DNA of 64,000 bases from Cyanophora paradoxa CCMP329 (lineage: Eukaryota > Plantae > Glaucophyta), in contig QPMI01000623.1 in the NCBI GenBank assembly GCA_004431415.1, positions 62,001 through 126,000 on the forward strand, read 5' to 3'. The notes beneath the pieces are model-generated. The model did not search any database, had not been told where the DNA came from, and saw only the letters and a list, made by a program, of their open reading frames with translations. The translations under genes and the position numbers were made by a program. Shown here piece by piece: positions 33,222 to 37,025 of this stretch (positions are counted from its first letter, which is position 1; each line of letters opens with the position of its first letter).

Positions 33222-33786
33222 TTTTTGCTCACCTCAGGATGCATATGTGCAAGATGGGCCCGGCCGCGGGGTCTGAATTAACATGAGCGCGGCCCGGCGC
33301 GCGCGGACTCTGCGGCCTCCCTGCCTATCGAGGGGCTCCGGATTGGATCCGGTGCCCTTCTGTGCAGAATGCAGTGGGGTTCAAGAAGGTTTGGGAGGTC
33401 GGCGTCTGCCAAGCTGATGGGCCGGGGGCCGGGTTCAGCGGTTGTGAAGTTCACTTGTAAATGGATACGCTGCAATTGAAACACTGTGACATCTACTAGC
33501 TACGACATCGCAACGTTAACTGCAAGCAACTAGCGATAACGAATTCGAACTGGCCAACGCCTTAGCGAGAGCCCACGGCTGAGCCGCAATCTCTTGTTGC
33601 ACATGGCCCGCAGGCGCGGGCGCACGAGCCCCTCCTCGGTGCGAGACAGGGGGCGGTCCGTGCGGGCGCTGAGGCCCCCGCCTCCTCCGGCGAGGTGCAT
33701 GGTGCGAAGCCGGGAGAGAGCAGGGCAGAGAGATGTCGCGAGAAGTGGGGCGGGGGGAGGGCGATTGGTGCGGCGGACGACTCGAC

Positions 33787-36700
33787 TTAGCGCCGTTCTG
33801 TCTTCCCGAGACCGCGCTTTCCGGAGGAGAGATGCTTGGGCCTGCGGGGGCCGCGGCATTAGCGCGGGGGCCGCGGGGCGGGGGGCGGGCGCCGCACTTG
33901 AGGTCGGGGATGTGACGGTCGGCCTCGCCCTTGCGGGCGCCCTTGTTCATTCGCTTCTGCATCTTGCGGGCGAGGGTGATGGCCATCTCCTTCTGGGCCA
34001 CGTTCCGCAGGCCCTCCTTCTCCGGCCGCACGCTCGCGCTCCGGCTCCGGCTCCGCGCCGAGGGCGTCGAGCTCCGCCCGGCGTCCGCCCGGCTCTCCGA
34101 CCGGCCGCGCTTCTTGCCCGTGACGCGGGCCTCGGCGCCGGCCGACTTGGAACGCGACCGCGTCCTCGCGGTGCGCTGCGCCCCCTCCTCGTCCATTCCC
34201 ATCTCCGTGAGCTGCTTCTCCATGTCCTTCCGGCTCTGCACGAGCGTCGGCGCGCTGCGCACGAGGCGGGGCGGGGCGGGGCGGACCCTTCCGGTGCGCT
34301 TCGCGACGCGGGGGATGTCGGGGCGGTTCTTGTTCTTCTCCTCGCGGTGCGCCTTGACCATGAGCTTCTTCTTCGTCCGGATCTTCTCCAGCTGCTCCGC
34401 CTCCTCCTCGTCGAGCTGCGCGGCGGGCTGAGCGGATGCCGTTCCGCGCGGTGTGCGGGCGGGACAGGGGCGGGTGCGCACGTCGTCGTCGCCGTCGCTG
34501 AGCTCCTCGCTCTCAGCGTCGCCGCGGGCGTCGCGCTCCTCCTCCTCGCGCTCGAGGGCCTCGAGCTTCTCGAGGATGTCCGGGTCGATGAAGTCGAAGA
34601 CGTTGTGCCCGTCCATGATCTCCGGCACCACGTCGTACTTCCACTCGTCCGACTTGAGGTCGTACAACTCTGCGCGGCGAGGGCGGGCGTCAGGCCGCAG
34701 GGCGGGATGGGGCGCATGGGCCGCCTGAGCAAGGGGGAAAGTGGGAAAATCTAAAGAATGTTCCGCGATGGGTTTGTTCCAAGCATAACAGCCACAACGT
34801 GGCACTGCCCGAAAACAAGGAATCATCGTGGGTAGCCCGACCGGAACGCCCGGAGGCGCTCAACAGATCGGGCTCATTCTAGGACGTTTGTGCCGGCGAA
34901 CTATACACCAGACTCGCTCCCGCCCGAGGGCAGGTGCGTGGTGCCTCAGTCGCACTAGAGGGGCGAGGGCGGCCAGCGCCTCGCTTCCTCCCGTCCGTGA
35001 AATAGATCGATATCGGGAAACAGAAAGATCGAATTTGCTGGAAACGGCGAACGCACTGTTGAAGTCCGGCGAGTAGACTCCTGCACCGCCGTTCTCGAGC
35101 ATGAGGTCGCGTTCGAGCTTCCGCTTTGGCTTCTCCGCCTCGGACATCTGCATAGATGCCTTCACCGACTCCGGGATCACCGGCTCCCGAACCTGCGAAG
35201 CGCCTAATCAGGCCACAATACGAAAAGCACGCTGGCCCAGATAGATCTATCTGTCTATTTGAAAAGAATGTTCCGCGATGGGTTTGTTCCAAGCATAACA
35301 GCCACAACGTGGCACTGCCCGAAAACAAGGAATCATCGTGGGTAGCCCGACCGGAACGCCCGGAGGCGCTCAACAGATCGGGCTCATTCTAGGACGTTTG
35401 TGCCGGCGAACTATACACCAGACTCGCTCCCGCCCGAGGGCAGGTGCGTGGTGCCTCAGTCGCACTAGAGGGGCGAGGGCGGCCAGCGCCTCGCTCCCTC
35501 CCGTCCATGGAGGAAATTGCAAGAAAGGCAGCGCGTAAACCTGACCCGCCCCAATGCCTCGCACCTTGTCATCACGTGCTGTAGGCATGGCCACATGCAG
35601 GCGGTTCATAATCTCGTTCGACTTGCGTGCAGTAACCTTCTGCTCCACCCTCATCGCCAGGAGACGCTCGCACGCCTGCGCAAAAATTCAACAACCGCTG
35701 AAGCGCAAGCTCAATTTCTTTCTGCACCTTCTCCTTCACGGCGGAAATGCCCTCCTCGCTTGCGTTGGACATCTGCATCACGTCGACGTTGTCCGTGACC
35801 ATAGACTGCAGCAGCTTCTGATCGGATTCCCTCAGCTGATCCGGACGGACAAGGTCCACTTTGTTGATGACAACGAGGAGTGGCTTGTTTGCGAAAAGCG
35901 GCTTGATGTTCTGGAAGAGGGCGACCTGTGAAAGCGCGTCAGCTGGGAGCGGCAACAAATGTAGGCGCCAGGCGGACCTGATCCTTGATCGAGAAACCAC
36001 ACTGCTCCGATATGTCGACGAAGTAAAGGATGGCAGCACGCAAGTGGGCGAGGGCTGTGATAGACTGCATTTCGATAGTGTTGCGCTCCTCCAGCGGGTG
36101 GTCGAGAATACCGGGAGTGTCAATTACCTAACAAAAGACATTGTCAAGTAGAGCGGAAACAAGAAGTGCAGGCCGGCAAACCTGCCAACGCAAGTACTTG
36201 AAATCCATGTGTCCTACGTAGAGGGACTTGGTGGTGAAGGCGTACGGCTGGACCTCCACATTTGCGCGGGTAACCTTGTTCATGAAGGATGACTTGCCCA
36301 CGTTGGGGTAGCCGCAGACCAACAGGGTGCGGGTGTTCGGGTCGATCGAGGGCAACCGAGCCAGGTGCTGGCGGACTTGCTCGAGGTAGGCGAGACTCGC
36401 TTGCTGCTTGCGCATGAGCGTGCACATACTGTGCGGCGGCAGAAGGCGCAGGGTAAGCGACGAGGAGTTGTCGCGGAGCGATCGCGATCGCACCGGCCCA
36501 TCGCTGCGCGCTTGAGCTGCTTGCAGCGGTAGAGAGAATCTCCGTACTTCATGAGACGCACGTAGTCCTTGCCGATGTTCTCGATCAGCTTCTTGCATGT
36601 GTTGATTTGCCCCAAGGCGAGCTTGTAGTGGTCCTTGTCGTACAACACGTTCATGAGGTCGCCGTAGAACGGATGAATATCCTGCACAGATGTCATTCTT

Positions 36701-37025
36701 AGCCTCGATCGCACGGCGGCAGCGCGAAACAGACCTCGAGGCGAGGGAAGTCGGTCAGGATTTGCGTGAGCTTCTCATCGTAGTTCTGCGCGGTGTATTT
36801 GACCTTGCGCATGTAGAACTTGCGAATGCGGTTGATTGCATAGCCCTTGTGTACAACCTGCGCGTCGAAGGGACGGCGATCGCGCGACTCAGCGCGGGGA
36901 GCCGTGCAACGAGGCAGGGGCGCGCGTACGGTGGGCGTTTTCCTCTGGGTCTTGGACAGGACGATATCGATGAAGTCCTTGGCCGTGGGGACGGTCTGGA
37001 TCTTCTTGAACTGGTAGAGCACCAT
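33787..37025 (-). CDS. NOG1: Nucleolar GTP-binding protein 1 (60S biogenesis GTPase)
   Basis: [91 protein letters not shown] and the C-terminus [18 protein letters not shown]. Confidence 0.98.
34756..34996 (-). ncRNA. Intronic H/ACA snoRNA, U17/snR30-like, copy 1
   Basis: Lies in NOG1 intron 34670-35056 and ends ACA+3 nt. The 3' hairpin has an internal loop with GAUUCCU (m1-like) opposite AAACCCAU (m2-like). The 5' domain is closed by GGACG/CGUCC and followed by an H-like AGAAUGA. Confidence 0.75.
35266..35506 (-). ncRNA. Intronic H/ACA snoRNA, U17/snR30-like, copy 2
   Basis: Lies in NOG1 intron 35193-35564. Identical to copy 1 (offset 510 bp) except one base (34986 vs 35496), while the intron flanks are unrelated. 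Confidence 0.75.

Follow-up and report, generated by a model that had tools for sequence, protein, structure and literature searches.

In a 64-kb window of DNA from the glaucophyte alga Cyanophora paradoxa (the whole stretch analyzed, in which all positions are counted), two consecutive introns of the gene for NOG1, a nucleolar GTPase of 60S assembly, each enclose a near-identical block of 241 nucleotides (nt), and each block probably encodes a box H/ACA small nucleolar RNA (snoRNA) of the U17/snR30 type, a likely orthologue within that family. NOG1 and both RNA units are encoded on the minus strand. Members of the U17/snR30 family carry two short motifs, m1 (AUAUUCCUA) and m2 (AAACCAU), on opposite strands of the 3'-hairpin loop at its basal side, and these pair with rm1 (GGAAU...) and rm2 (UGGUUU) of expansion segment 6 (ES6) of 18S ribosomal RNA (rRNA) (PMC7601244, PMC2664660). 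The m1/m2 element is placed invariantly 7 nt upstream of ACA in U17/snR30 (PMC2664660), and its consensus is nearly invariant from yeast to Tetrahymena (PMC7601244). In the Cyanophora RNA the motif alone is no proof of identity, and its weight comes from standing in the right place within a duplicated, H/ACA-shaped intronic unit.

The duplicated intronic unit and its fold

The two units and their parts are arranged as follows.

35266-35506, minus strand: copy B, predicted mature U17/snR30-like RNA, 241 nt (from the repeat, the fold z score and the coordinates)
35392-35506, minus strand: 5' domain of copy B, a closing helix GGACG/CGUCC over two stems of similar size, lacking a pseudouridylation-type pocket (fold)
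35384-35390, minus strand: hinge of copy B, AGAAUGA, H-box-like and one base too long for ANANNA (sequence)
35345-35383, minus strand: internal hairpin of copy B, from the hinge to the 3' hairpin (fold)
35273-35341, minus strand: 3' hairpin of copy B, with a small pocket between the lower stem CCACGAUG/CAUCGCGG (one A.C mismatch) and a long upper stem (fold, sequence)
35327-35335, minus strand: m1-like 9-mer of copy B, UGAUUCCUU against the consensus AUAUUCCUA, core AUUCCU identical (sequence)
35279-35285, minus strand: m2-like 7-mer of copy B, AAACCCA against the consensus AAACCAU, core AAACC identical (sequence)
35269-35271, minus strand: ACA box of copy B, with UUC (3 nt) to the predicted 3' end (sequence)
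34756-34996, minus strand: copy A, predicted mature RNA, 241 nt, its sub-parts at the copy B positions minus 510 (sequence comparison)
34817-34825, 34769-34775 and 34759-34761, minus strand: m1, m2 and ACA of copy A (copy B minus 510)

The units form the body of a direct repeat of 247 nt (34753-34999 and 35263-35509, 99% identity), and within the 241 nt the copies differ at one base (99.6% identity), where G at 35496 in copy B is replaced by A at 34986 in copy A, converting a G-C pair at a helix end to A.C. The tract of identity opens with the initial base of the closing helix (GGACG...) and closes 6 nt past ACA, and the conserved unit is therefore the structured RNA plus 3 nt. The first-pass annotation of the window, made from the letters alone, had described one 241-nt block repeated in introns of 387 and 372 nt, about six times the local norm, with a one-base difference, unrelated flanks and an end at ACA plus three. 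This description holds throughout, the remaining NOG1 introns measuring about 50-75 nt by the spacing of tblastn segments, the intron flanks of copies A and B having 7-mers in common at chance level only, and the RNA closing with ACA and UUC. Because the copies are near-identical and their flanks unrelated, the arrangement would imply either that gene conversion has acted on the RNA unit alone or that a copy of unit size arose very recently, and judged from its boundaries the converted or copied unit is equal to the RNA and not to the intron. The identity continues for 3 nt (UUU; 35263-35265 and 34753-34755) past the predicted ACA plus UUC end and stops abruptly at both ends.

Between the 5' splice site and each unit there are 58-60 nt, and between the unit and the 3' splice site 73-86 nt (58 and 73 nt, respectively, for copy B), with the branch sites left free. 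If the units were a duplicated segment without function, or a small mobile element, with a stable fold by chance, a recent insertion into neighboring introns would likewise leave near-identical copies with unrelated flanks. Such an origin is very improbable, as both copies are in the sense of the host and well within the introns, clear of splice and branch sites, the boundaries match a closed RNA structure ending in ACA plus three, neither terminal repeats nor a poly(A) tail are seen at the unit ends, and a 32-nt probe drawn from the unit detects no copies in the window beyond these two, with 0 expected by chance. Strong structure is also present on one strand only, with the minus (sense) strand folding at -122.5 kcal/mol and a z score of -5.3 versus dinucleotide shuffles (0 of 200 equal it) and the plus (antisense) strand reaching a z score of -1.7. 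A retrogene origin is rejected, with neither a poly(A) tail nor a target-site duplication seen at the ends of the unit.

The predicted fold orders the parts of the U17/snR30-like RNA as a two-stem 5' domain, hinge, internal hairpin, 3' hairpin and ACA. An internal hairpin between the H region and the 3' hairpin and a 5' domain without a functional pocket are both characteristic of U17/snR30. The 3' hairpin proposed in the first-pass annotation is recovered as the minimum-free-energy fold of that segment folded alone, its pocket being a small internal loop whose 5' strand carries AUUCCUU and whose 3' strand carries AAACC (about 7 and 5 nt). The hairpin is followed by one A, then ACA and then UUC, placing ACA three nt before the predicted 3' end in both copies, as in box H/ACA RNAs, where this end is taken from the identity block. 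With AAACC unpaired there are 14 nt from the upper stem to ACA, in agreement with the 14-16 nt between pocket top and ACA in box H/ACA RNAs; the minimum-free-energy fold adds two A-U pairs in the pocket and leaves 12 nt between upper stem and ACA.

The hinge AGAAUG (35385-35390) is fully complementary to CAUUCU (35265-35270), which spans the ACA box and tail (copy A at these positions minus 510), and the unconstrained fold pairs the two. This hinge-tail helix may be due to chance or may represent a closed precursor form. A different structured intronic RNA, either a Cajal-body H/ACA RNA or a cis-element regulating NOG1 splicing, would find support here, as the complementarity allows a closed form hiding both boxes and the canonical H box is lacking. 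This explanation is very unlikely, given that barring the hinge-tail helix costs only 2.9 kcal/mol and that a splicing element needs no exact 241-nt unit in two introns. None of the three UGAG sequences lies in a terminal loop (0/3), leaving no Cajal-body (CAB) box, and the Cajal-body RNA is rejected on this ground.

The m1 and m2 motifs and the assignment to U17/snR30

The two motif cores directly adjoin the lower stem CCACGAUG/CAUCGCGG at the pocket's basal side, which is their position in U17/snR30, and AAACCCA is separated from ACA by UCGCGGA, giving the invariant 7-nt spacing of the family. AUUCC and AAACC are complementary to GGAAU and (U)GGUUU as conserved in the 18S rRNA of yeast, human, S. 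pombe and Tetrahymena (sites from PMC2664660). The outer positions are changed from the consensus AU...AU to UG...CA and still pair together, as U-A and G-C where the consensus has A-U and U-A. The final U of the m1-like 9-mer is also present in the C. elegans m1 (PMC7601244). In simulations a random 64-kb sequence contains the composite ATTCC...AAACC-N9-ACA 0.02 times on average (both strands), and the composite accompanied by 7 of 8 lower-stem pairs occurs in 0 of 200; both are observed twice in the window.

An ordinary or orphan box H/ACA snoRNA, either a pseudouridylation guide or an RNA without an assigned target, could resemble m1 and m2 in its 3' pocket by chance, and in its favor the Rfam U17 models do not recognize the RNA and the motif matches are short (6 and 5 nt). 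The anatomy makes this unlikely, with pocket strands of only about 7 and 5 nt that lie on the basal side beside the lower stem, a 5' domain without any pocket, and the layout of H region, internal hairpin and 3' hairpin that is a trait of U17/snR30. The RNA is also about 100 nt longer than usual guides, falling by the typical U17 size (203-240 nt), and the joint chance of two specific 5-6-mers being fixed relative to the stem and ACA is estimated at ~1e-6 per hairpin. A canonical pseudouridine guide is rejected, as the pocket is too small and too basal.

Several observations weigh against the assignment to U17/snR30. The m1-like UGAUUCCUU agrees with the consensus at 6 of 9 positions and the m2-like AAACCCA at 5 of 7, with the rRNA-pairing cores AUUCCU and AAACC intact. 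No H box of the form ANANNA is present anywhere in the 241 nt, the hinge reading AGAAUGA, as anticipated by the first-pass annotation, which had called the H box non-canonical. The covariance models for SNORA73/snR30 that it had proposed as a check return no match, neither at the gathering score of Rfam 15 over the 64 kb nor at E<=10 over 1 kb and even over 131 nt, and the output at E<=10 is noise only (for example snoR41, mir-7961 and a long non-coding RNA). Scaled to a genome of ~100 Mb, about 30 bare motifs and about 0.5 with the lower stem are estimated by chance, because of which the case rests on the motif within the duplicated, H/ACA-shaped unit.

Relatives of the RNA were sought among transcripts, metagenomes and NOG1 loci. 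The nearest other NOG1, a spliced MMETSP transcript (41% identity, word search), is without a homologue of the 241-nt RNA. A metagenome scan for the pattern m1 variant, gap, m2 variant, 6 nt and ACA gives 57 matches versus about 30 expected by chance (estimate); because none of the 57 has a pocket framed by a lower and an upper stem, they are taken as chance. The NOG1 introns of relatives, also put forward earlier for comparison, carry nothing similar in three green algae, the loci of Chlamydomonas, Coccomyxa and Micractinium showing no Rfam match and no U17-like hairpin, relaxed cores included. No homologue from another species is found among these transcripts, metagenomes and loci, and consequently there is no covariation support, which counts as a further point on the opposing side. 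The proposal of a divergent U17/snR30 in two NOG1 introns is partly supported. All testable parts of its anatomy fit, and the identity stays short of fully supported because the Rfam models are negative and ANANNA is lacking.

The NOG1 host gene

The host locus is composed of the following features.

33790-37025, minus strand: host gene NOG1, about 10 exons (Pfam matches, mapped EukProt model)
35193-35564, minus strand: upstream host intron holding copy B, 372 nt, GUGCGA...UUCGCAG, with CUGAU 16 nt before AG (exon borders by tblastn)
35057-35192, minus strand: intervening NOG1 exon of 136 nt, encoding the first part of the NOGCT domain (Pfam NOGCT, tblastn)
34670-35056, minus strand: downstream host intron holding copy A, 387 nt, GUGCGU...CGCGCAG, with CUGAC 20 nt before AG (sequence reading)

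The naming of the host as NOG1 in the first-pass annotation is confirmed by four Pfam domains (NOG1_N, MMR_HSR1, NOG1 and NOGCT) that match exon open reading frames (ORFs) at the minus-strand locus, and by its best database relative, EukProt EP00741_Cyanophora_paradoxa_P021990 (tig00021432_g21227.t1, 613 amino acids), which is placed exon by exon on 37025-33790 by tblastn. Both long introns are of the GT...AG type and have a branch-like site (CUGAU or CUGAC) 16-20 nt ahead of AG.

The exon at 35057-35192 is absent from the published model P021990, which joins across both introns. It keeps the reading frame, opens the NOGCT domain and has aligned counterparts in the NOG1 of Picochlorum, Chlamydomonas and an MMETSP protist, and therefore the two-intron layout is right and the published NOG1 annotation is wrong at 35057-35192. 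The exon is missing from the model because the gene predictor probably merged both snoRNA introns into one intron of about 890 nt. In place of the 136-nt exon, P021990 reads a few codons of the upstream intron as coding.

The window has a G+C content of 70%, and long spurious ORFs are present in all six frames around NOG1. One ORF of 436 amino acids (33516-34826, minus strand) has its AUG inside the m1 of copy A (gAUGAUUCC) and runs on through the remaining intron until it enters the last large exon of NOG1, and ORF-based gene callers would wrongly stretch this exon over the copy A snoRNA. A protein word search with this ORF returns nothing beyond the EukProt model of the alga itself and distant NOG1s, and the same search with an ORF of 106 amino acids, which spans the middle exon plus half of the copy A unit, returns no match. 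At the gathering score the whole 64-kb window contains no Rfam family and no ribosomal DNA.

Proposed function and comparison with known U17/snR30 RNAs

The sequence, fold, unit boundaries and motif geometry are read directly, and the remaining mechanism is drawn from knowledge of the family. RNA polymerase II would transcribe the units within the NOG1 pre-mRNA, and the H/ACA proteins (Cbf5/dyskerin, Nop10, Nhp2 and Gar1) would assemble co-transcriptionally on the nascent intron. Intronic snoRNAs are usually freed by splicing and exonucleolytic trimming, and here splicing and debranching would be followed by exonucleases that trim the intron until the protected RNA of 241 nt is left, with GGACG... 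at one end and ...ACAUUC at the other. Once in the nucleolus, AUUCCU and AAACC would pair with the separated 18S segments rm1 (GGAAU) and rm2 (GGUUU) in ES6, keeping this segment open as a snoRNA-ES6 three-way junction, which would let the platform subdomain of 18S fold and the early cleavages freeing 18S rRNA take place, as in yeast snR30. In yeast the three-way junction is sensed by Utp23 and stops early ES6 folding during platform subdomain assembly (PMC12095548), and snR30 is needed for the A0/A1/A2 cleavages. Besides Cbf5, Nop10, Nhp2 and Gar1, Utp23/Kri1 also bind U17/snR30 RNAs. The earlier suggestion that the layout couples a 40S-processing RNA to a 60S factor is best regarded as a speculative gloss, as U17 hosts vary by lineage and the green-algal NOG1 loci are empty.

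Among the H/ACA RNAs of yeast, snR30/U17 is the only essential one, and the family has been described as ubiquitous. Its mechanism has recently been seen by cryo-electron microscopy, with snR30 chaperoning 18S platform folding via the three-way junction with ES6. According to a 2021 review U17/snR30 could not be identified in Arabidopsis, and our literature search, later papers included, finds no report of a plant or algal U17/snR30 and no paper on Cyanophora snoRNAs. Judged from sequence and fold, the prospects are somewhat better than even that the Cyanophora RNA is a functional glaucophyte U17/snR30 and the first family member identified in Archaeplastida. What is new is the lineage. The twin-intron layout and the NOG1 host are unsurprising, because multiple intronic U17 copies and switching between host genes are already known.

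If the assignment is true, U17/snR30 would be placed in the common ancestor of Archaeplastida, and the departures of the Cyanophora RNA (the re-paired UG/CA base, the lack of a canonical H box and of an Rfam match) would show why homology searches miss the RNA in the plant lineage. The features surviving divergence would be both cores of 5-6 nt and their basal placement, the distance of 9 nt up to ACA and the internal hairpin, and those lost would be the H box and the outer motif bases. A relaxed descriptor would then consist of a lower stem, a 5-6-nt strand able to pair with the organism's own rm1, an upper stem, a 5-nt strand able to pair with its own rm2, 9 nt and ACA. With such a descriptor, looking for the plant U17 that is still missing would become a well-specified task, and the chief value of the RNA would be as its template.

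The yeast snR30 sequence used for comparison was rebuilt from the primers printed in PMC9176245, with the 3' end taken from the snR30R primer, and reads ...UUAGAUUAAG / internal hairpin / CCGCAGU-AUAUUCCUA-AACAC... and, with m2 AAACCAU, ...GGGUAAAACCAU-ACUGCAG-ACA-UCU at the 3' end (PMC9176245). The Cyanophora counterparts are CCACGA-UGAUUCCUU-G... and ...ACAAACCCA-UCGCGGA-ACA-UUC. Both RNAs have the order 5' domain, H region, internal hairpin, 3' hairpin and ACA plus three, identical cores AUUCCU and AAACC atop the lower stem, 9 nt between AAACC and ACA, and a 5' domain without a usable pocket. They differ in that yeast snR30 is an independent capped gene of 606 nt, 2.5 times longer than the intronic 241-nt RNA, with the full AUAUUCCUA/AAACCAU and a canonical H box (AGAUUA, read from a primer) compared with UGAUUCCUU/AAACCCA and the hinge AGAAUGA in Cyanophora, whose RNA the Rfam snR30 model does not match.

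The vertebrate U17/SNORA73 (E1) RNAs are similar in size (203-222 nt) and share the four stems, two of which precede the H box, and the two-stem 5' domain is common to the Cyanophora RNA and to human U17 as described in a review. Vertebrate U17 is intron-encoded and freed by exonucleolytic trimming, and the Cyanophora RNA is likewise intronic. The first-pass annotation was also correct that vertebrate U17 occurs as intronic duplicates in other hosts, with two copies in successive introns of human U17HG and six in those of Xenopus S8 compared with two here. Host genes of U17 differ between lineages, the vertebrate host being a non-coding or ribosomal-protein gene and the Cyanophora host NOG1. 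In contrast with the Cyanophora RNA, vertebrate U17 has canonical m1/m2 and is recognized by Rfam RF00045.

Departures from the consensus are found elsewhere in the family. The Tetrahymena U17 (about 240 nt) has the m1 AUAUUCCUG and an rm2 of only 5 nt, a precedent for a 5-bp m2/rm2 helix, and T. brucei snR30 has an altered m1 matched by changes in 18S. For both of these RNAs cognate 18S pairing is documented, whereas for the Cyanophora RNA such pairing is a prediction. Because the Tetrahymena m1/rm2 and the T. brucei m1 depart from the consensus, the comparison shows that the family accommodates variation like that of the Cyanophora RNA.

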